Made by a program: the position numbers and the translations under genes. A DNA stretch of 64,000 nucleotides, from positions 249,337 through 313,336 of the forward strand of contig RHPI01001168.1 in the NCBI GenBank assembly GCA_009103225.1, read 5' to 3'. Below, piece by piece: positions 34,191 through 49,268 of the stretch. How positions within the stretch are numbered: position 1 is the first letter of the stretch; each line of letters opens with the position of its first letter. Source of the DNA: Chlorokybus atmophyticus. Lineage: Eukaryota; Plantae; Mesostigma and Chlorokybus algae. The notes below the pieces were generated by a model. That model ran no database searches and had not been told where the DNA came from. It worked only from the letters and a program-made list of their open reading frames with translations.

Positions 34191-37045
34191 GTGACCTTTC
34201 ACTCGATGGTGTTGTAGTTGATAGGTGGATTAAAAGCTCTCACGCCCTTGGGCGGCAACGGCGGCTCCAATGCCATCACACCCTTCCTCCATGCTTGGCG
34301 AACCTTGTCTCGAGCCCTCTATTGCCGCTGAGCACAATGTTGTGAAGCCAACTCCAGCTCTTGTGACTGAGTTTGATCCATATAGTTCAGCTCCGGAGGT
34401 CTCCCCCCCTGCATGTGTGTGGAGACACTCTCTCCCTCATCCACATGGTCATAGTACATGTCGGTGCTGTGACCAATCCATTCCTTGACTGAACGGCGAC
34501 TCAAGCACGCCCAAACAGCAGATGCGGAGGTTGGAGTCCTCTCAACACCCCCCTGCGTGATGCTCAACGGGAAGTAGGCCCTCTCACCTCCACCCACACG
34601 CCAATGCGGCCGAAAGAACCATTGTTCGATCCCATTATCGCCGCCGCCGCCGACGGGGAACAAGAAGTCTTGTCCGAGCAGCATATCATACCCCGTCGCA
34701 TGCGTGACGAGGCATTGAACGTAAAAGCAAATTGTAGCACCTCCCAACGCAGTCACGCGGATGCCATCACAGTGTCCATCGGCTGCACCGTTATGCCGCA
34801 CACAGCCTCCACAGTCCCCGCCGAGGTACAGATCATGACCAAGCATGGCTCCCACTCCTTGGGGCTGAGTCCCATCCCTTTGACAGCTCTAGCACCCAAA
34901 ATGACGGGTTGTGCACCTGTATCCACCAAGACAACACCTGGCACGAAGCCGTCTAGGCTGATGTGCCCCCCTCGAGTGTCCACCATCGCCACGTTCAGCG
35001 ATATCTACTCTCTCAAGGCCGGCCGAGGGGCAGGAAGCTGTGCCAACATCCCTCCTACACTCCTGACACCTTCCAATTTGTCTCCAAGCTGAGTGAGAGA
35101 ACTTGACGCCGACCCCTTTGACGCCGCCATCCATCCGGCCTATTTGCGCCACCATTTTCTTCATGAGACTTGCTCACATTGTCATGAGACTTTGTCGGAG
35201 CAGTCCTTGTGGTGTCAAGAGCGCTTTGCAACAGCCCCATCACGTTCCTTGCTGACTCCAAGGTCCTTCAAGCGAACAAGCGACTGCCCGACCAGCTCCG
35301 CCGCAACACTCTCTAACGGCACCGTCAACCTCAAGTTTTCTTCATGGACTTGAGCTGCGGGCTGTTGGGAAAGTGTCTTGGCACCCTCGAGAAGCTTCAC
35401 ACACATTTTTAGCAGCTCATCCACTCTCTTGTGCTCACCAACGCCACCGACACCAACATCATGTTGCGCCGCTGCCATCGCAGCCGGCTGCACTTCGCAC
35501 CCTCCAAGCGCGAACTCTCTTGCTCCAACAGGGTTGTTTGCAGCAACTTGACGTGGGCATGCGCGCAGGTGGTGCTCGTATCCTATCATGATCCACACCC
35601 TCCTCGCAGATGAGTGCGGCCTCCTCCTCGACCATCCTAGTCCGAAGAACTGGTGCAGCGTTTCGGCATGCCGACACTCTCGTTATCACCTTGGTGCCTT
35701 GATGAAGCGCACAATACGCAAGGTAACCTCCCGAGCTGCTTGGCTATCCTCCGCTCCTCTCTCGGGCTGTTTCCCTCGCTCAAGCATGCTCTTCAACGAC
35801 GCATACTCCGATTGCATTGCCGCCAATGCCTTTGTCAACTCCGATATTGATGGCTCTCCTCACACTCGAGTGAGCTCCAATCGCCCCTTCTTGTTGTGGA
35901 TGCAGCTCCATATGCGTACTCCAACACTTGTCATCAACATGCGCGCTATCTGATAAGATATGAGATATTTTGCAATGAGAGCACACCACTTTCTTGCAAT
36001 TCTTATAATCCCACGCAATATGGCCTTACTCTCTACACGACCAGCATTTGGCACCGACACATCTTCCACAACCATTGTTGGCGTGCTTGAGTTCCTTCTA
36101 CTTCCCACCAGCTGCCTTGCTTGCGACCGATGTTGCCGCGGGCTTGGAACAGCTCTTCTCCCCGAAATCTCAAGCAACTTCAACCCCCGACGCTGCTGGT
36201 CAATGTGCTTGAGGTACTTTGCTAAATCTTTGCCGTCTCGGCCACCTTGAAGATATCCGCAAGCATATACACGGCGAACGCGGACTGCGTGGTCAACATG
36301 GTCTCCACCTTCAGCCTCAAGTCCGCCTCCAAGTGTTAAAGGTAGACAACCGCCGGTCAATCCGTCATCACCTTGTAGTCCGTGTCCGTCAAGAGCTTGA
36401 GCATGCGCGTATTCATCATCCTAGTTGTCTCCCTGAGTCGCGCTTATGAAAGATCAGCTCACAAACCTTGGCGGTGGTTGATTGTGGGTGGGAATTTCTC
36501 AAGAGCACCTTGAACTCAGTCACGGGCTGCTCAATCTCCCACTCCGCTTCAAACGCAGCTGGTGCGCCGAGCCGCAACGCCTTCTCCCTCACCTCCAGCT
36601 GCTCGTTGAACTCTCTCCACGTGCCTCAGGCTTCAACTGTCAGGTACAAGGGTAACATCTTGAAGGCTTTGTGCGCGTCCCACCCCGACTTGTCCCGGTA
36701 CTCCTGTGTTACCATTTCGGAGTCGAAGCGGTCGATGAAGTCTCGTAGGTCCGTCGTGCCAGGCTTTCCACTAAATCTCGATGTGCTATCAATGATTGAA
36801 GCTGAATCAGGCATCACTCCAGCCTCGTTCTCGATGTTGGACTCCTTGTCACTCGACAACTCCACCTCTTTGGCAAGGCCCTCCTCCACTGGAATGTCCT
36901 TCCTTCTGATGCTCCTCTCTGCAAGGGCACCTTCGATAGGCGTGAGTGCTAGTCCTCTTTAGATTTGGTGGGCATGTACTCGCCTGCAACTCGCTTCTAC
37001 CTCGAGCAAACTCAGCTGATGGGTTGGATGCAAGTGAAAGATGCA

Positions 37046-37985
37046 TGTCCCCTTGCAACAGGTAGGCAAGACGACCACAACTTGATTTGCAATCAACCGT
37101 GCAGAGTTCAAACTCAACCCTCACAACATGTACATGCTAAGGCAGCCCATACGGTGCATCAGAGTCGCAACAATGACACACGCCTCTTTATGCACAGAAT
37201 TGCACAGCAACAAACACGTGTGCCGTGGGCTTGTGAGGCTGCTCGTCATGGCGCCGGTTGTAGAAGGAGCGTATGCAATTGTGCTAGCATGCGGCTTCTT
37301 CTCTAGCAGCATCAGCTCAATGATGCCCCAGGCGTCCAATGTGAACGTTAAGGTGTCCCCTCCAACCTCCTCGAACGCGCGCATCACGCGCACACACACA
37401 TCATACATGCAAGCATGTGCACAAGCATTTCCTCAACCAAGAACCTTTTCCCAAAAGTGTTGCTTGCACTCTAGTAGGCTCACTTGCATTCAATTGAACT
37501 AGAAAACAAGCTAGCAAAGCATTATATACCACCGTAGAGCCTAAGCCCAACCAACTCTTGAACTGCCCTAACCGCCAGTCTCTACACTAGCATAGTAACA
37601 GTCATGATGGCGTTGATAAGCAACGGTACACGGTTAGGAAAGGCTGATCCAAGCTTATCCTCTTCAAGTACACAAGACACATCCTTTGACGCCAACCCAC
37701 GGCCAAACCGTTGCTCCAACTGTAAGTTATGGCTTCTCAACGTGACAACTACAAATCAACGGTGAGATACCATAGTGACCCAAATATGCTGTCAGCTTGT
37801 TATAAGACTGTAGATACACCTCGCTTACACACCACCCTTACGTCCATGAGGACCCAAACATGGACTTCCACAAGAAAATCCAACACATAAACCCTGTAAA
37901 ATGGCTATGAGAGCCGAAATTCCAAGGTCCATACCGCCAGCCCCGAGGGCATCATGCACTTAACACTATATGCTCGCACATGACA
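37046..37985 (-). repeat. 5' LTR of the Gypsy element
   Basis: Lies upstream of gag on the minus strand and matches 27326-28103. Confidence 0.9.
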
Positions 37986-38558
37986 CTTTTTGACACATGG
38001 CATCAATGCTGCACACGTTCAGCATGTTCAACATTCACATGCATCAACACTTCACACATACATACCTCACCGACCACAACCGGGCACAATTATTGACTCT
38101 ACGCCCATCAGCTAACTACCCCACCCTGTAAGTCATGCATGCATGCATGCTGACCGAGTTACCGGCACCACGGCCACTGATTAGCGCTTCAATACTTGCA
38201 GCGGTACCAGCAGCAGCAGACCCAACGGACTCCCCCTCCTCCTCCTGTGCAAGTGCCAGTGCCACCACCTGCCATGTTTTGCCAAACCTGGACATAACAC
38301 CAGCCCTTCCTGCGCGCACACTGCCATCCATGTTTGGCAACACGTTTATGTGGTACAGCAATAGCAATTCCAGTCAGTCTGTATATATATCGGCAACTAC
38401 AGCGCATGCTCTTAAGGCATCTTCCTTTATCCCTGCGACAGCAGTGGGCAACCGCCGGGCAGACTGCGCTAACATATGATATAAACTGTTGTGTCATGTG
38501 CGAGTACACGCACACAAGCTCGCTCGCCCTCACAACACAACTTGTCTGCACAGCAGTC

Positions 38559-41500
38559 TTACTGCTGCTTTTCCTGGAGCTGGCGTATCTGCTCTGCCTG
38601 CTGTGCGAGTATTGTCTTGAGTCGGTTGACCTCCTTGGTCTCGAGGCTGCGGTTGGAGTCGGGGTTGTTGGCGACGAGCTTCACGCGGCCGGCGTAGTCG
38701 AGGCTGTTCCTTGTCTCGCCGCCGTCAGACCGCAGCGGCGACACGTTGACGATCATGAGCGTCTTGGCGTTGCCACCCAGGCTGTCGCTCATCAGTTGCG
38801 TGAGCTTGTGGTTGCGGTACGGCACGAAGGACGCGTTTGAGGTCAGAGCCGCCACCACGTCACCCAACGCGGAAAGGCTCTTGTTGATCGCGCGCGCCTC
38901 GTTGAGACGCGCTTCGCTCTCCAACGCACCCGACTTGGCCACGCGCTCCGAACCCGCTAGGTCCACAAATGTTAGCTTACCTGCACACACAGACACACAT
39001 GCACACATTACACGCAATGGCTGTTTTGTCTGGTCCCTGTGATTTGGCTGTACATAACCAAGCCAGAACATGCTCGTGGTTAGCAGTGCGCACACGCACA
39101 TATGCACACACGCACACACGGAAAGCACTGGGCTCATCACATACCTCGCGAGGTGGTGCCGGATATAAGGTTGCTGTACTCGACCAAGATTGTGAACATG
39201 AGGTGGGACCGTGAGCTCTGCAACACAAAGAGAAGACAAACACCTTGCCAATCTGACCATGCTCTCTCTTTTTAACTTTACACACCGACTCTGCTGCACT
39301 GAGCCAATGAACACAACTCACACCTGCACGTTCATCTTGGTCGAGGCAGTGCGCCTGCGGGCGATGCCGCGGTCGTACGCCGCACGCAAGTCTTCCATTG
39401 TCGCTGTGGAAGCATACACAGCGCCCTCCACACGCACCACGCCAGCCGCGTCCTTCTTCACCTCCAGCTTCGGGTTGTACTCCGAGTCCGCGGCCGACAA
39501 CAGGTCCATGAAGTTGTCCTAATGAGGACGCATCAAGCATGTGCTCAATGTTGGGTGGTGAGAGTTGTTACTGCGTGTTCATTGCCTTGTCGAGCGCACC
39601 TGATATAGCTCCAGCATAGAGCATTGAACGCTAACAGTGGATGAGCCCGGCCGAGCAAAATTAAAGATATCCTGCATCGCTCTCGGCACGATGCCAGGCT
39701 GATCTTCTTGTCCCAGTATGGTATATGTCTTTCCGGATCCTGTCTGCAATTCACAAGACAGTGGCAACATAAGGGAGTGATTCATACACAAGTCTCCAAC
39801 AATGAACAATAATCAACAGCAGTACGTGGCGAATTTGCTTGTAATTGTACCTGGCCATAGCAGAATATGCAGATGTTGTACCCATCAAAGACAGACTGTA
39901 TCAGGTCATGCGTCTCTTGATACACCTCCTCTTGAGATACGTCACCAGTAAACACATGATCGTACCTTTTGCAAAGAAGCATCATGTTGGGTTGTGACAA
40001 GCAACAACCACCAACCATTGTATGGCATGTGCGATAGATAGGCAGCCAATGACAACTTACTCGTATCGCTTGGTGATGATGGCAGTCTCTGTCGCGCGCT
40101 TCTCCTCTTGCAAGATCTCCAGCGTGTACTCGTCTGTCTGCAAGGGAGCACGCAATGTTGTGTCAGTGGGAGAAGATTGAGATTGCGAGAGGGTGGAGAG
40201 CGCAAACATACCGCCGACAGGGCGCAATCGTCGGGGCCTTCCCCACGCAGCAACGGCCTCACACGCGCCAGCACGCGTATGTTGCCCTTCATCTCACGTA
40301 TCTGGTTGTACAGCTTCTTCCTCAATATGCTCTCACGCTTCAGCTCCAGCGCTGCACGACAGGGTCAACTTGAAGCACACACGCACACAAGCACCCATGC
40401 ACCCACACACAGACACTGCTTGTACAGTGAGCGAGCTGCATGCTATGAAGACAACTTACTCAGCGTGGATAAGCGGCGCTCAGCATCGGCATACTTGTCG
40501 CGCAGTGTCTGGCCGAACGCCAGCTGCTCCCTGAGCGCCTGCGCCTCGGACTTCGCAGCGGCCAACTCGCGCTCCATCTCGATCGCCCTCAGCTCCAGCT
40601 GGTCGCGCTTCGTCCTCAGCTCCCTCACTTCCTCACGCAGAGAAGACTCCTGCTCCACCATCTTTGCGAGCTTCTCCTCCTGAGGCAAGCACAAGGCGGC
40701 AATGGGTAATCGTTCAATGGCACTGTGAGTGCATGCAAGCACACTTGCATATGTAGAGACAAACTGCGCATGTACGCGTGCCTGCTCGGCCGTGCACACG
40801 CACACTTGTATGCAGGCACCCACGCACCCACGCACACACTTGCACACGCACACGCATACGCACACACTCAGAGCGAGTATGACTGTCCCCCTACCAGGAA
40901 TGCTGCTGCTTCCGCTCCTCCTGCAGCTGCATCGCGTGCAGTGAGCTCCGCAGCATGCGCGGTTTTCCACTCTTCCAGCTGCTTGACCTGCAACACAATG
41001 ACGCAGAGCATGAGTGGTCTGCGCCTCCACACAAGGTGCAGCCAGAAGTTGTAGCTTTGCATGACAGACACCTCTTGCATCAATTCCTTCATCCGCAGTA
41101 CGGCCAGTGACTTCACTTGATCCATCTCGGTCTGGTGCGATGCCAGCGCAGCCGCCAGATGCGCCGCATGCGCCTCCGCCTGCATGCACAGACCAACTTG
41201 CATTTCCAGTCAATCACTTGCTTTTAATTGTCATACACAGCACACCGTGAGCATAACAACAGTCATGATACACGACAAACATGCGACATTCTACATCAGC
41301 TTTGACCTTTGACCACTGCAAAAGAGTCGTGTCAACCGCTGCTGGATTGCTGCCAAAACATAAGCTCACCTGTTGGGCCTGCGCAAGTTTGGTGGCCTCG
41401 AGCTCGCTTTGGAGATCCGCAAGCTCTTGTCTGCTGCGGCTGGACTCCGCCTGAGACACGACAAACACGATAGAGTATCATGACCGCACGCACAAGGTTG

Positions 41501-43985
41501 GATGAGTGTATGTGTCATACGAGCGCGTACGTGTGTGCGTGCGTGTGTGCGTGCACATACCTGCTCATTGGCAGGGCCCGTGCGCTGCTGTATATCCTGC
41601 AGTGTCATCTCACGTTGGTACTGCTCCAGCACGTCATTGAGCTCGTCATTCGCCTACACAGCAACTAGACGGTCAGTCACCACATGTACACGCCGCTGTG
41701 TTAATCACCAACATGAGAGCTTTGCGCATACAACGCACCGCGAGCAACTCCATCAGAGTGCTTTCAGGCAAGTTGTCCTGCATCAGCAGGCCCTGCATCG
41801 AGTCCGCCCACATCTGACACCTGCGGGGATTACATGTCAGTACTATTCACGTAACATACCGCACCCCAACATGAACTGCATAGCTACCACAGACACGTAC
41901 CGCTGCCTCAGCGCCTTGGCTTCTTCCAGCCCAAACCCATTCGCAGAAGAGGTCTTTAAGCCGCAAATGCAATAGTGTTAGAGCTCAACATGTGCTTCAC
42001 GCATAGTGATACCACAACAGCGCAATGCATACCAACAGTAGTTGCATGAGCGCAGATTCACCTGCGCTGCGCGCATGGCATCCCGCAGCCGCGTGACATC
42101 CATCCTTATGTGCTCCACTTTGATCTGCAGCATAAACCACAACACAACGCTCAAGCCTTGCACAAACAACGAGGACACGCTATTCTCTTGTTGCAACTGC
42201 TCTGGTCTAAAGATGATGTGTATTACCCGTTGTGGGGTGCCGGGCTGGCTGGAGTTGCGCGAGGCAGAGCCGCTCCCGAAGCTGTCTGCGTACCCTATCA
42301 CGCAGCAGCGGGTGATTAGACACTACACACACACACATTTGCATGAATGTCTGTTGCAGCTGTCGTCCTCACCATTTGAGCGCGGTGTTGTGGACTGCTG
42401 AGGCATGCTCGGCAAACCTGCCATGGTGTGACAACTTATTGCTCGACCGAAACAACAACGTGCCCACATGCTTTGATGAGACCAGATCTTACAAACTAGG
42501 AGCTCACCTGCATGCCTTGGTGCGACGGCATATGCCGCATAGTCCATCTCGTCGGAAGGGGGTGGCACTGTTATACCTGCAACAAAGCAACGGTAGTCGG
42601 TATTTGAGTCTGTGTTGCCACGTGGTGCCAGCATGTGTTGGGTGGCATTGTGCATACAACACTGGGAACTCCACCTTTGGCTGCAAGATTCTCGCAGGTT
42701 CTGCGCAGCTCCGCACTGTGTGAAGAGGAAGATGACGAGAGCGTTGGATACTGGCTGTGTGCGCAAACATGTGCATGCATACAGACGCGAACGCACGCAT
42801 GCGCGCACACAAACATTGACGCACGCACGCATGCACGCCCCCATGCATACCTTGCTGCTGGAGTCTCGACGATGGCAGCAGTCCAGTTGGCAAGCAGCTG
42901 GCAAACGAGCCGCCGGATTTGTTCATTCTGTGCAACACAAAACCCACAAGGCAAGCTGAGTCAAGCCATTGATTATGTCCCTCTCACGACAACGACAACA
43001 ACAACAAGCACTTACAGGAGAGGAGGTGGCGAGCTTGGAGAGGCGCTTCTGCCAGGGTCGCGAGGCGAGATGGAGGTGGAAGTCGGGGCCCGCGTTCTTG
43101 ACGCACACGTCGAGGACGAGCAGGGCCTTGACGGCAATGTGGTGCGCGGGGGTCTTCACGTATGGCTTAAACACCGCCAGGCAGTCCTCAGCGGCACCCG
43201 CACTCCCCGGCTGCTGGCCAGAATTAGCTCCACGTGTACGCGCACGTGCACATGAGCATGCATGTGCGTGTGCGTGTGAGTTTGCATGTGTGCACACTCC
43301 CAAACTCGAGCCCGTGTGCGAGTGTGTGCGTGCGCGTGTGGTCACCTGGACAAGGAGGTCAACGAGGCGGAAGGCGGCGTCCCAGTTGACGGCGTCGCCT
43401 GCGGCGCTAACGGCCTCCTGCAGCGCCGCCTGCAACCGCCGCTTCTGCGCGTCCCGCTGCGCCTATCCCCACACGCACAACATGCAACGCACGGTTTGAT
43501 TGCATGTGCAATGGTTTGGGTGTATGTAACACTGGACCACATGCGTGCGAGGTGGTGGAATGGAGTAACAACAACTAAACTCGTCCCAGTCACAGAGTTG
43601 AAGCACGTGACAAACATGCAAACGCACACGTGCTTGATCATCATCATCAGCGTCGTTTTCATCATCATCATCATCGTCGTCATCATCATCATCATCATGT
43701 GGACCGCAAGGCCGCTGGGGCAGCGTTGCTAACACACTGCCGCAGCAGCAACGATAAATAGTTGGGCAAGCACAAAGACAGCTGCAATGGCTTGCTTGCA
43801 GATCTGTGACACGTCCTGTGAATACGTTCAAGCTGTTCTCGCAGGCATCACAACACTGACATTGCACCACTAGCCTGCAAGGCCAAGCATCTGGTGAGGT
43901 GGTTGAGCTAGATAGATCAACCCTCCTCCCAAACACTCACCCCGCCACTGCCGGGGCTGTCGGCCAGCCCACGCAGGAGGTTCAT
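38559..43985 (-). CDS. Putative VHS-GAT (TOM1/TOL-like)-coiled coil-kinesin-14 (KCBP-like motor) fusion protein; 23 predicted exons
   Basis: An unbroken phase-consistent GT-AG chain runs from ATG 43985 to stop 38559. VHS: VNWDAAFRLVDLL, IAVKALLVLDVCVKNAGPDFHLHLAS, IRRLVCQLLANW. GAT: STLMELLA|ANDELNDVLEQY. Coiled coil, then neck RKKLYNQIREMKGNIRVLARVRP, P-loop GYNICIFCYGQ|TGSGKT, switch I MNVQ|SSRSH, switch II LTFVDLAGSER, VPYRNHKLTQLMSDSLGGNAKTLMIVNVSP. Confidence 0.85.
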
Positions 43986-44292
43986 CGCTCACAGCCTGCC
44001 ACCCTGGAGGCCTCCCTCAACGCTGCCGCTGCCGCCGCGCCCGCCTACCCTGCCCAGGACAAGCACAACCAGGTGAAGTAGTACATGTCACGCATCCCAA
44101 AAATGCAACACTGCAGTGGTCCATTTTTGACTCACACCGTGAAGGGCGTGTTTCAAAGTACGTCGACTACGTAACGGATTGGTGTAATCCAGAGGGAAGC
44201 AGGGGAGGGTGTAATTAGCGGCGGCGGCGGAGGAGGAGGTGAAGGAGGCGAGGGTGGAAGGGAAAGAAGGGAGGGGGAGAAGCCTGCCGGCC

Positions 44293-45236
44293 ATGCCTCA
44301 GAAGGCGCAGCTGTACAAAGGGCAAGGCAAGCCTGCGGCAAGCAAGGCCAAGGAGCGGCGCGACAAGCTCAGGACAAAGAAAGGTACTGCTACTCCTGCA
44401 CCGCATGGGCTTGTCCGTGTCCTCTGTGTATTAGCATTAAGCCTCTGCAACGATGTTATGTGGATGATTATTGACTGGTGGCGTGGAGCATATGCAGGCA
44501 AGTTCTTCAAGCCGGCCAAGAAGAAGGCTGCGGACTTCAAGCTCACAGAGGTATGGTATAGTAGCTCTCTTCTCGACATGCGTCCTTCATTCATTTTCAA
44601 CTATTTCTTTGTCGATTGCTCGGGACATATTTTCGCAAAATGTTTCTCAATAACAGCAGGTCTTGTACTTTGTACTTTGTCGGGTCGTTGACCCGAGGTG
44701 AAATCCTTCCCGCATGCAAACGTTGTGAGTTATTGTCCGTACCCGCTGTAGTGACAGTCTTGAGTGGTGAGTAGTTAATTACACAGCAGTGATTTACTTA
44801 TACAGCTCGTGCAGCTGCAAATGTCAGTTGGTGTTTGCAACCACCTCACACCACATCAACCAGAACCCCCAACACACCAAGTAATAATGTTTGCACACAC
44901 GCGCGTGTGCACGGGCATATTTCGCACACACGTGTGCGAAATATGCCCGCGCACACGCATGCGTACACGTGTGTCCATCAGGTTGCCTCTCCGCTCAGCT
45001 GCTAAGTGTGACAGTGGAGTGTTTAGTGAGCGGTGTTCACCCTCAGTTTGTGTGCATGTGTGCAGGAGGTCACAAAGACAATCAACCGCAGGAACGAGCA
45101 GGTGGCTGCGCAGAGGGCCGCCATGAATGGCGGTCACCTGCAGGTGCTCAAGACGGAGGAAGGGCCTGCTGAAGCCTCCACAAACAATAAGAAGAAGAAA
45201 ATCAACAACACCGCATCTTCCTCTCCTCCTCAGTAG
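44293..45236 (+). CDS. Leydig cell tumor 10 kDa protein homolog (C19orf53/UPF0390-like), small basic protein; 3 exons
   Basis: Exons 44293-44383, 44498-44550 and 45066-45236: MPQKAQLYKGQGK...RTKK|GKFFKPAKKKAADFKLTE|EVTKTINRRNEQVAAQRAAMNGGHLQVLK. Confidence 0.75.
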
Positions 45237-45989
45237 GCGCTTGGAACAGGCTTGGGAGAGGCTGCGACACTCCACTGCGCTGCCAGCGTCGTGCCACCGT
45301 GAGTGTTTAAGCCTCCGTTGTGTGATGTGAGACTAGAGGCCAAAGCGTCGTGTCTCTCTGATGGGCAACACTTGGTGGCGCGTTGACAAGTGTAAAAGTC
45401 CCCATTGCCTGGGCTAAATCAAGAAGGAGAGCCCTTATGCCTTACGAGAGGCCATCAGGCGATGGAGGTGATAGTGTTGGCAATGGACAGCGGCGGGAGC
45501 AGCAGGGCACGCACGGAAGTCGCATGACTTTTTGGCAAGTGGCTTGGGTTTGGTGTCAGAATTAGAGTGCTGTCGAAATCGGGCAACGACCAACTGCCAG
45601 TTGCAAGCAAAGATACAGCCACCCCTGTTCTACCCTGCTCTACTCAATTGGCTTTTCTGAAGGAAACCCACCACACACAGGCACACTGTGATGTCTGGCA
45701 CATGGTGCAACCGGTGGTTGACTGTAGCGGTCTGTCGCACTGGGGCAGTTGTTGGAAGTTAGGGTCAAACATACGTGTACAAAAGGAGTATGCTACTATT
45801 CTGCCTCTGCTATCGCTATGTATTTACCTGCCCAGCTGCTGCGTTGTGGTAGCTATTGCAGAATGCCTGATTACCTGCACAGCTGCAATGATGCTGTATG
45901 ATAAGATTGCCACCATGGATGCATGCGCACTAGCTGGTCATTGCAAATCCTTCCAGACCTCCTGTGGCCCAGAACCACCGCATCAATCG

Positions 45990-46360
45990 ACAACAATACA
46001 ATGCGATCAGCCGCAGTGCCAGTTGCACACAATGTGTGGTGACTACACTTTTACAGATAAATTGCTTGAACACAACCCAGTGTAGCAGTTGGTGCGCACT
46101 GCCCTGACGCAACTGCCCACTCAACAATACTGCTGTGATCAACTGCAATTGCCATGTGCACACAAGCTGTGGTGACTACACTTCAACAGATGCATTGCTT
46201 GTAACGAACCCGACGTAGCAGTTGGTGCGCTCACCCTAACCGCCCACTCAACGACACAATGCTATCGACCGCAGTGGCTATTTGCACACAATCTGTGGTG
46301 ACTATACTCCAATGGATACATTGTCTTAGTCCAACCCAAGGTAGCAGTTAGTGCGCAAGT
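45990..46360. repeat. Diverged tandem repeat, about 3 copies, ~126-133 bp period
   Basis: The core tgcacacaa..tgtggtgacta.ac recurs at 46024, 46157 and 46283, each followed by ...gtagcagtt.gtgcgc. Confidence 0.85.
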
Positions 46361-46981
46361 GGGCAGTTGCATCCCTGCTGCAACTACTTTTTAGCCAGCA
46401 TTTCTGCTAGCTGATTGCAACGACTGGAGCGAAGCAGCAGGTAGTAGCCCAGGAGGGGTTACTTCCACATCCCTCCAGTTACATGCACTGCATACCAGCA
46501 AAGCTCGTGAGCTGAGCTGTACACGTAAGGCCACATGCTGGTGCGTTGCCCCGAATGCGCAGCAGCACGTCACTGTGCTTGTATAGTGCCAGTCCAACCA
46601 CTTGCGGGATTGCTGTGTCATGACATCACACGTGATGGGCAGTCGGCAGTAGAGTTGGATGTTCTGTCTTGAGCGCAGCATACCACCTTCGCACAATGTT
46701 ACTGTTGACCACCCCCTAAATGTTGCACCGTCTTTACAATGAGGCTGGCTCAGAGGCGACATCCCACCTGCACACCTGGATGAGTGATGCTCAATCTTCC
46801 GCCTGTATACGCATGACAACGCACAAACGGCGTGCCTAGTGATTCCTCAACATGTATGCTGACATGACTGGCTTGCCCATGATCACCACGCACCTTGTAC
46901 CAGTTATTGATAACGACTTGATGGTGCATGTAGGACGTCATGCTTGCAGGGTAAATGGTGGCGTGATAATTGCCAGGGTCA

Positions 46982-49268
46982 TCAGAAGGTGTTGTTAGCT
47001 TTCTTCAGCAGGTGATCCACATCTGGTGTCAGCACAACACGATGACTGATATTGCCCAAAACATGGCAAGTTCCTACTGCTGGGTTGATGGCGGCTGCCT
47101 GCTGACTAAATGCACACTTTGCTCCAGGAACCACCTGCGGCAACACACAAAATGCACGCATCCAATGTCAGTGAGATGCTTGGATGCCAGGATCAACCTT
47201 GAGCCCACATGCAAGCACACTCCTGTGCTCGCTCACATCAAAAAGGACATCGCCGAGTTGAAGCTTGACAGCGCCACTTTCATATATGTGCATCTTTCCC
47301 ATCACTCCGCTTGGTAGACTCCCCAGTATTCCACGTTTAGACTCTGCAGGCATAGCCGCCACGTCGGGTCTTGTGTCTGCGCTGGCTGAGGCTTCAGCAG
47401 CTGTGCCACTCTGCAGGGACACTGGCAGCGCCGCTGGTAGCTGAAAAAGCAGTAACTGCTCTTCATCTCCGCCAGGCTTTGCAGATACAGCATGGTCAGA
47501 TCATGATGCGCTTGCACTACTACTGAAAACGATGGAATGGATGCAAGTTCCTACTGCAGTTGCTTGTTTACCATCAACTGAAGCTCGTTTGCAGCTGAGG
47601 CGTCGTCACCTTCATCACCTTCAGTGCTCTCAGGGCCTTCAATCATGTCTGCCATGTGATGCCAACAATCGTGTCACATACATACTTCTTACTGCTAGCG
47701 CCACACACATGCAAAGGCAACTAAGCAGCACCTGCTACTACGTGACCGGGTTGCTGTAGCGGCAAAGTCATGGGATAGTATTTGGAGTAATCCTGCGAAC
47801 AACACAGCAAGTCACGCAGTAAGTACCAGACAGCCTGCTGAAACCCCATATGTGCTGCAGCAGCGTAACAACTACTTACAAAGGCTTCCACAGCCTTCAG
47901 CTTCTTGTCATGAGCTGGCTTGACGTCCTTCATATCAAACTCTGGTCCTTCCTGTTCCTGTTTCACACGGACTGCACTGCCTGATGTGCCGTGTGCACCT
48001 GCAGTACTTGTGCCTGTGCCTGCATTGGTCAACAATGGGCTTGACCACCAGCATGGCTGAGGCCAATGTTGTCGCCTGCCAACATTACACTGCTTACCAC
48101 GAGCAGACGCTGACTTGTTTGCACTGGACATGGCTCTCTGTGTGGCATGCGAGGCAGCTGAGCCGTAGCCAAAAGCTACTTGCGCAGCCGGTGCGGCCCC
48201 TGTAAGGAAATGTTGTGTGTTTTGCATGCTCAGGTGCCTCCTCTGACAGTCATCTCAATAACCAAATGCAGCATGAGCCAGTCCATACCCTTGGATTGAA
48301 GACCCTGAAATGATCGCACTTTGGACCTGCTCGACTGGCTCTGCTTCGACTCCTGCACAAGGCAGCCAAGGTGGTCACATGCAAACATAAGCTCAACAAC
48401 ACCCAAGCGAGCCTAATCCAACTACACACTCTGCAAGCAGCCGACCCGGGTCACAAAGGAGTCGCTATTTACCTCGAGCAGATTTTTGATATCATCATCC
48501 GCCATGGCACCCTCTTCACCTCTGCAAGTACTGCAATGTCAGTCTAGACAATAAAGAAAGCTGTGACACTACGTTACAACTGGCGATTCAGTCAACGAAC
48601 ACCAAGAGAGACAGCGCAGGCACCATACCCGTCCAAGTCTGTCTTCCTCACTGCCCGGCGAGTAGGCACCTTAGGCATGAACTTCTTCTGCTCGTGCGAA
48701 ACACACTCAGCGTCAGAAGCACGGTGAAAGACAAGGAGACACAAAGAGAAGAGCGGAGAGGCGAGCACGAAGAGTGCATTAATCATGCAACAGGCAGAGT
48801 AACAGTACAGGTGCATTTTGTTGCTAACTTAACTTTCGGCATTGAGAGCACATTGCAGACGAATCGGCCATCATGCAGCTAACAGTCGCATGCAGTGAGC
48901 AGAGCTGAATACTAGAGGGATCCAACAGAGGGACACCACAAGCTCACCAAGCCCCACAGAGGCAGTGTTCAATTTTGTAGTGTCATTACCTTTTGTACTC
49001 CTCCACGTGTGAAGCCGGGCGTTCCTGCATGTTCGCCCGCAGAACCAGAAGCGGATGGACCTGAGACGGATGCCGGCACATCGTCGACGTCCATTGGTGG
49101 AGCGGCGGCAGCAGCAGCAGCAGCGGCGGCGGCAGAGTCCGGCTCTGCCGCCGGAACTCTGTTCGCAGCTGGCGGAGGCGAGCGCAGGCTACCCAGCCTA
49201 CCCGCAGGCCTCTCGGCGGATGCCGACAGCGGCGCCAAGCGGCGCCTGCCTCTTGGCGCCTGCGCCAT
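46982..49268 (-). CDS. RPC4: RNA polymerase III subunit RPC4 (C53/POLR3D); multi-exon
   Basis: KKFMPKVPTRR near the N-terminus, DYSKYYPMTLPL, LLFFQLPAALP, LPSGVMGKMHIYESGAVKLQLGDVLFDV|VVPGAKCAFSQQAAAIN...VLGNISHRVVLTPDVDHLL. Confidence 0.9.

Follow-up and report, generated by a model that had tools for sequence, protein, structure and literature searches.

A predicted VHS-GAT kinesin-14 of Chlorokybus atmophyticus and its relation to the Kin14VIc motors of Bryopsidales

A 64,000-nucleotide stretch of the genome of the streptophyte alga Chlorokybus atmophyticus (GenBank assembly GCA_009103225.1, contig RHPI01001168.1, forward-strand positions 249,337 to 313,336; hereafter the window) contains, on its minus strand, a gene whose predicted product joins a VHS-GAT head of the type found in TOM1 and the plant TOL proteins to a complete kinesin-14 motor. 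Judged from its motor and its domain order, this gene is an orthologue of Kin14VIc, a kinesin-14VI in which a VHS tail replaces the MyTH4-FERM tail and which was described by Ogawa, Ochiai, Shirae-Kurabayashi and Goshima (J Phycol 2025, PMC12961179; bioRxiv 10.1101/2025.05.19.654777, May 2025); the kind of protein is thus already known. What appears to be new relative to the published account is a wider range that includes streptophytes, an earlier origin, and a GAT domain in the tail. A probability of about 0.75 is given to the joint claim of this architecture, the orthology with Kin14VIc and a general logic in which the tail binds a cargo and the motor moves it.

One reading frame from head to motor

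The minus strand was read from position 44600 to 38000 of the window, and the gene model was rebuilt independently by joining the open stretches with a script. The resulting gene occupies 38559..43985 (−) and consists of 23 exons, with an ATG at 43985 and a TAA at 38561-38559. All 22 introns are bounded by GT...AG and range from 74 to 478 nt (mean 128), and the joined coding sequence of 2619 nt encodes 873 amino acids with no internal stop. In the predicted protein, a VHS domain is followed by a low-complexity linker, a GAT domain, a coiled coil of ~170 residues and a complete C-terminal kinesin-14 motor (Table 1). A preliminary description of this DNA had given the same 23 exons, canonical introns and stop-free frame, which the rebuilt model reproduced exactly. 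Its placements of the VHS and GAT domains fit exons 2-5 (43462-42675) and exons 9-12 (42124-41561), respectively, and the motor is complete, as had been claimed: the P-loop GQTGSGKT spans exons 19 and 20 (39856-39851 and 39743-39726), switch I (SSRSH) lies in exon 22 (39217-39203), and switch II (DLAGSE) lies in exon 23 (38963-38946). The same description had also proposed a single gene, a TOM1/TOL-type head, and a KCBP-type kinesin-14 motor without a MyTH4-FERM tail, each of which agrees with the evidence given below.

Exon 23 (from 38975 downward) served as the query of an exhaustive HMMER search, which returned the public Chlorokybus atmophyticus model Chrsp52S06609 (P0003, 850 amino acids) with 100% identity over this exon. 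The next best full-length matches were Mv00547-RA.1 of Mesostigma viride (P0006, 904 amino acids) and g4708.t1 of Caulerpa lentillifera (P0008, 900 amino acids). P0003 differs from the 873-residue model in four respects: a later acceptor is used for exon 3 (−11 residues), exon 4 (42927-42851) is skipped, intron 8 (42226-42125) is retained (+34 residues), and exon 15 (40987-40895) is skipped. Two alignments favor the 23-exon model: exon 4 matches the QLLANW helix in the Mesostigma protein, and exon 15 extends a stalk motif that is common to all orthologues. P0003 is thereby corrected in four places. The full-length Pfam scores for Chlorokybus reported here were measured on P0003, not on the 873-residue model. 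As a side observation, the top-scoring matches to exon 23 were P0001 (659 amino acids) and P0002 (1106 amino acids), which align in 4 and 6 separate stretches, respectively, at ~50% identity; these proteins represent either a repeated C-terminal motor segment or artefacts of assembly or gene modelling.

The faults of the public model lend some weight to the idea that a TOL-like VHS-GAT gene and a kinesin-14 gene, lying head to tail, have been merged on paper only. This idea is nevertheless highly improbable. All 23 exons stay in frame through canonical introns, and the largest intron between the GAT and the motor measures 215 nt, which leaves no space for a promoter. The stretch from GAT to motor is itself coding and keeps a motif that recurs in Mesostigma, Caulerpa and a metagenomic transcript. 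The same architecture is moreover found in three independently assembled genomes and in Bryopsis, for which a 1019-residue protein and cDNA-derived double-stranded RNAs (dsRNAs) exist. Finally, exon words from both halves of the gene occur at an equal share in one RNA run. In this run (X1), 0.33 of the 31-mers sampled from the whole gene were present, relative to an exon-internal maximum of 0.357, and the GAT-to-motor stretch (40212-41653) held 0.37, relative to a maximum of 0.393, or of 0.348 if exon 15 is left out. Shares this close to the exon-only maxima indicate that the exons of the head, stalk and motor are all contained in one RNA sample from which the introns are absent. A second run from a separate study (X2) gave 0.22 for the whole gene and 0.24 for 40212-41653. 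Based on the frame held through all introns, the conserved stalk, the recurrence of the architecture elsewhere and the even exon coverage in the RNA runs, the locus is read as one gene that joins a VHS-GAT head to a kinesin-14 motor, and we infer that all 23 exons are present in a single mRNA in Chlorokybus.

At the N-terminal end of the protein, exon 3 by itself scores 38.5 bits as VHS, above the Pfam cut-off of 29.8, and sits among VHS clusters by language-model features (0.95). The full-length proteins score 34.8 (P0003), 41.2 (P0006) and 40.0 bits (P0008) for this domain. The GAT exons are individually too short for Pfam scoring; in P0003 the GAT domain reaches 28.1 bits (E 2.4e-6), relative to a curated cut-off of 31. 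The expectation that Pfam would return VHS, GAT and Kinesin was thus borne out above the cut-off for VHS and Kinesin and not for GAT, for which sequence and fold matches to the Protein Data Bank (PDB) provide further support. With exons 9-12 (P0003:232-330), the five best PDB sequences are all GGA1 GAT (E ~0.009) with all three helices aligned, and a GAT profile made from the three orthologues also reaches the GAT of TOM1. An AlphaFold2 model of these exons contains three helices, with a predicted local distance difference test score of 82. When this model was compared with known structures by Foldseek, the ten best PDB folds were all GAT domains (GGA3, GGA1 and TOM1), with a root-mean-square deviation of 1.8-2.1 Å for 75-78 columns. 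The presence of a GAT domain is therefore judged on the joint Pfam, PDB sequence and predicted-fold evidence, which points to it consistently, and not on the Pfam threshold alone.

A GGA-type head was considered and rejected, because the N-GAT hook and the GAE ear are both absent: neither the GGA_N-GAT hook nor the GAE ear gave a Pfam match at E 0.01 or better. The nearest neighbors of the Mesostigma head by language-model features are streptophyte VHS(+GAT)/TOM1-like clusters. Together with the VHS and GAT assignments, these results support the predicted head as a full TOM1/TOL-type VHS-GAT head, with the note that the VHS domain is, by sequence, equally near to STAM, Hrs and TOM1. As in TOM1 and the TOLs, VHS leads through a flexible linker into a three-helix GAT, with neither an N-GAT hook nor a GAE ear. 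In contrast, the long C-terminal region of TOM1/TOL proteins, with its binding motifs for clathrin, Endofin, myosin VI or ESCRT-I, is absent and is swapped for a coiled coil and a motor. The Chlorokybus protein has a TOM1-type head yet is not a TOM1/TOL protein overall, since a coiled coil and a motor follow the GAT.

The stalk that follows is co-linear with those of P0006 and P0008, and exon 16 gives weak matches to coiled-coil families in Pfam; it presumably forms a coiled coil and dimerizes. The motor comprises residues 485-873. In P0003, the match to the Pfam Kinesin profile (334.9 bits) extends over profile positions 1-326 of 327, the Microtub_bd match scores 140.9 bits, and exons 20, 21 and 23 each score as Kinesin on their own. 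Among solved motors, the best matches are the KCBP structures 1sdm and 3h4s (346 bits), followed by KIFC3 (243), Kar3 (210) and Ncd (195). The alignment with KCBP 1sdm extends past the motor core, through the neck mimic, and into the start of the regulatory helix. The last helix, as aligned to KCBP, is rich in Gln and Glu where KCBP has a Trp and a basic cluster, and control of the Chlorokybus motor by Ca/calmodulin appears doubtful. The protein thus shares with KCBP/KIN-14E (kinesin-14VI; 1SDM, 3H4S) the C-terminal position of the motor, the neck mimic and the neck junction KGNIRV, whereas the MyTH4-FERM tail of KCBP is absent: neither MyTH4 nor FERM gave a Pfam match in P0003, P0006 or P0008, in a scan in which the KCBP-like protein P0017 shows both.

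Orthologues and age of the fusion

P0006 and P0008 each contain VHS, a weak GAT and Kinesin in Pfam, and their parts are co-linear with those of the Chlorokybus protein. Over the head, stalk and motor, identity is 34, 34 and 62% to Mesostigma and 26, 38 and 53% to Caulerpa. To place the motors, a maximum-likelihood tree was calculated from 75 neck-motor sequences (LG+C20+F+G4, 1000 ultrafast bootstraps, unrooted). Five sequences form a clade with support of 100/100 and a long stem (0.75): Chlorokybus, Mesostigma, Caulerpa, the metagenomic fragment P0007, whose contig begins inside the gene, and the MMETSP fragment P0004. Inside this clade, Chlorokybus pairs with Mesostigma (99/93) and P0007 with Caulerpa (99/95), and the clade lies apart from plant KCBP. 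Two sequence marks are exclusive to it. The first, VK..A..R[IM]K[EQ]L, lies in the stalk and occurs, among ~176 proteins compared, only in P0003, P0006, P0007 and P0008. The second is CIFCYGQTGSGKT, which is common to all five members and has CIFAYGQ as its KCBP counterpart; where KCBP has CIFAYGQ, the clade has CIFCYGQ. CIFCYGQTGSGKT was also observed in P0151, a metagenome protein from JGI (422 amino acids) that lies outside the sequence set of the tree and is possibly a further member of the clade.

The published Kin14VIc proteins, known from Bryopsis (GMH44105.1), Caulerpa and Ostreobium, are stated to be absent outside Bryopsidales and to have originated there (PMC12961179). The Chlorokybus protein resembles them in its C-terminal KCBP-like kinesin-14 motor, its coiled-coil stalk, its N-terminal VHS and its lack of MyTH4-FERM, and its motor falls in the 100/100 clade with the Caulerpa protein, which stands in for the Bryopsis sequence. 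It differs from them in its host, a streptophyte alga rather than a member of Bryopsidales, in its length (873 residues versus 1019 in Bryopsis), and in the GAT, which is seen in Chlorokybus and weakly in Caulerpa and Mesostigma and is absent from the published description. The claim of the preliminary description that no VHS-GAT-kinesin architecture had been described therefore does not stand, since the VHS-tailed Kin14VIc was already in print, with its GAT unmentioned. Neither version of the work of Ogawa et al. (the J Phycol article and the preprint) mentions GAT, Mesostigma or Chlorokybus; the Bryopsis genome paper names neither of these two algae, and a full-text literature search returned no paper that ties Chlorokybus to kinesin-14 or KCBP. 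VHS is listed among kinesin-associated domains across 19 species in a figure of Richardson et al. 2006. With predicted members in Chlorokybus and Mesostigma viride, the restriction of Kin14VIc to Bryopsidales is not upheld.

Contamination of the Chlorokybus assembly by a bryopsidalean alga was considered and rejected, as the nearest relative of the gene is that of Mesostigma and its exons are present in RNA runs of two separate Chlorokybus studies.

Chlorokybus and Mesostigma belong to Streptophyta and Caulerpa to Chlorophyta, and the simplest reading of members in both is one fusion before the split of these lineages, followed by many losses. An origin before this split is further indicated by the single 100/100 motor clade, the inner branching of which follows the species tree. 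The family is thus probably older than the divergence of chlorophytes and streptophytes, with later losses in many lineages, land plants among them. If the shared architecture were instead not ancestral, it would have been transferred from one green lineage to another or arisen by two separate fusions within one motor subfamily. The known distribution, which is patchy, speaks for such a history: Ogawa et al. report no such protein in the other green algae that they surveyed (PMC12961179), and when metagenomes were scanned with a neck/P-loop alignment specific to the clade, none of the best 80 kinesin loci (≤50% identity) has a VHS-GAT open reading frame (ORF) on its contig. However, the pairing of the two streptophytes and of the two chlorophyte sequences is as vertical descent predicts, co-linearity extends over the head, the stalk motif and the motor, and the lineages have diverged far (53% identity for the motor and 26% for the head), unlike after a recent transfer. 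Transfer or repeated fusion is accordingly considered unlikely. Word-index searches with the P0003 tail, the P0003 GAT-to-motor stretch and the Mesostigma VHS returned only the queries or one weak kinesin and are uninformative on distribution.

Feature positions and surroundings of the gene

Table 1. Positions of the features of the Chlorokybus VHS-GAT kinesin gene in the window
Feature	Position	Strand	Support or remarks
Whole coding region	38559..43985	-	23 exons, 873 amino acids; P0003 100% identical over exon 23
Exon 1 with start codon, MNLLR...	43941..43985	-	Identical MNLLR start in the Mesostigma orthologue P0006
VHS domain, exons 2-5 (43462-43346, 43213-43016, 42927-42851, 42715-42675)	42675..43462	-	Pfam on exon 3, language-model features, alignment of exon 4 to Mesostigma
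S/P/G-rich low-complexity linker from VHS to GAT, exons 6-8; opens with a conserved G-x-x-x-PPP motif	42227..42576	-	Alignment
GAT domain (three-helix bundle), exons 9-12	41561..42124	-	Pfam, PDB sequence matches, profile, AlphaFold2 and Foldseek
Coiled-coil stalk, exons 13-16, residues ~318-485	40460..41450	-	Weak coiled-coil family matches on exon 16; alignment to P0006 and P0008 stalks
Clade-specific stalk motif VK..A..R[IM]K[EQ]L, exon 14, running on into exon 15	41081..41116	-	Motif comparison
Kinesin-14 neck and neck-core junction (ESILRKK...KGNIRV), exon 17	40212..40351	-	Invariant in 5/5 clade members; Pfam Microtub_bd 140.9 bits
Kinesin motor domain, exons 17-23	38559..40351	-	Pfam Kinesin 334.9 bits; best solved relatives KCBP
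C-terminal KCBP-like neck mimic and next helix	38562..38669	-	Alignment to KCBP 1sdm; conserved in the clade

The ORF lists of 34200-38560 and 43990-49000 contain no adjacent TOL or KCBP gene that would hint at a recent local fusion. On the plus strand, a divergent ORF that begins MPQKAQLYKGQGK... starts at 44293, ~307 bp from the kinesin ATG, an arrangement that suggests a promoter region shared in both directions. A scan of the gap upstream of exon 1 for promoters and terminators of the bacterial type was empty, a result that is irrelevant for a eukaryote. Intron 1, the longest at 478 nt, contains an imperfect ATG/ACG trinucleotide repeat of ~65 nt (43636-43700, minus strand), and microsatellite-like runs of the GT/CA type are abundant in several other introns of the gene. 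Farther downstream, ORFs at 34319-34992 (−) bear the retroviral-type aspartic protease motif VLVDTGAQ and are probably the edge or a remnant of a long terminal repeat retrotransposon.

Proposed cargo and meaning of the fusion

Functional data on the family come from Bryopsis. There, RNA interference (RNAi) against Kin14VIc with three non-overlapping dsRNAs slows chloroplasts that move either way, from 208 to 86 nm/s, and leaves the microtubules undisturbed (PMC12961179). In vitro, the Bryopsis motor glides microtubules at 43 nm/s; its dimer is non-processive, and a GCN4 tetramer is processive at 258 nm/s (bioRxiv 10.1101/2025.05.19.654777). By analogy with their families, the stalk of the Chlorokybus protein would hold two chains together, and its KCBP-type motor would walk toward microtubule minus ends. 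If single dimers are non-processive here as well, transport would need several motors clustered on one cargo, as does the Bryopsis motor in vitro. The VHS-GAT head may dock the motor on a membrane-bound organelle via low-affinity, multivalent contacts to ubiquitin, phosphoinositides or both, and contacts of this kind would bring several motors together on a marked membrane, in keeping with the need for clustering. In TOM1 and TOL proteins, VHS and GAT both bind ubiquitin weakly, favor chains and also bind phosphoinositides (PMC7952518). That ubiquitin is the mark recognized by the Chlorokybus head is, by this analogy, a tentative proposal. The membrane carried could be either endosomal cargo or plastids.

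For endosomal cargo, the protein would act as a self-motorized ESCRT-0-like receptor that carries ubiquitinated endosomal membrane proteins to microtubule minus ends. The order of the head is that of TOM1/TOLs, in which both domains are ubiquitin binders, and the GAT model fits the structures of GAT-ubiquitin complexes best. Animal TOM1 also provides a precedent for the coupling of a VHS-GAT adaptor to a minus-end-directed cytoskeletal motor, namely myosin VI (PMC7952518). That complex is non-covalent, is formed through a motif in the TOM1 C-terminal region, and works on actin; in Chlorokybus, the same region would have been replaced by the stalk and motor, which yields a covalent version predicted to work on microtubules. 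However, the C-terminal region by which TOM1 connects to clathrin, Endofin and ESCRT-I is missing from the head, and the phenotype of the Bryopsis knock-down is one of chloroplast motility. An endosomal receptor of this type is rather doubtful.

The Bryopsis phenotype speaks for a motor that positions organelles, the chloroplast foremost, in which VHS-GAT would serve as a protein- or lipid-binding adaptor or regulator at the envelope, with ubiquitin uninvolved. Chloroplasts are slowed both ways with intact microtubules, and the closest motor relatives, the KCBPs, move chloroplasts in moss (PMC12961179). This role is possible and is held tentatively, as an indirect effect could also slow chloroplasts both ways, the protein is not known to have a partner on the envelope, and the need for long-range plastid transport differs between Bryopsis, a giant coenocyte, and Chlorokybus, whose cells are small and contain one or two plastids.

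In its most extended form, the proposal is that a KCBP-type minus-end motor acquired, by fusion, a TOM1-type head that reads ubiquitin or lipids in the ancestor shared by green algae and land plants. The fused protein would have been kept in Chlorokybus and Mesostigma, as the earliest-branching streptophytes, and in Bryopsidales, would have been lost toward land plants, and would couple ubiquitin-marked organelle membranes directly to retrograde microtubule transport. As a whole, this chain of steps is speculative and unlikely to hold in every part. To our knowledge, these organisms lack cytoplasmic dynein-1. The joint claim of architecture, orthology and general logic stated at the outset is more modest, and several points weigh against it or its extensions. 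The GAT falls below the curated Pfam cut-off in all three orthologues (Chlorokybus, Mesostigma and Caulerpa). A single fusion of head and motor is suggested by the motor tree and by tail similarity in the same order, not by a tree of the VHS-GAT. The sole phenotype of an orthologue, that of the Bryopsis RNAi, concerns chloroplasts and not endosomes, and the taxonomic range of the VHS-GAT kinesins rests on few species.

In the published account, the VHS-tailed kinesin-14 is an invention of siphonous seaweeds, linked to the giant size of their cells. Among streptophytes, Chlorokybus and Mesostigma stand farthest from land plants, and orthologues in these two algae would place the beginning of the family at the root of the green lineage; what would then call for explanation is the loss of the VHS-GAT kinesin from most green lineages. 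Once the GAT is recognized, what had been called a "putative VHS protein-binding domain" becomes a full head of the TOM1/TOL type, for which K63-linked ubiquitin and phosphoinositides may be put forward as concrete hypotheses of cargo binding.

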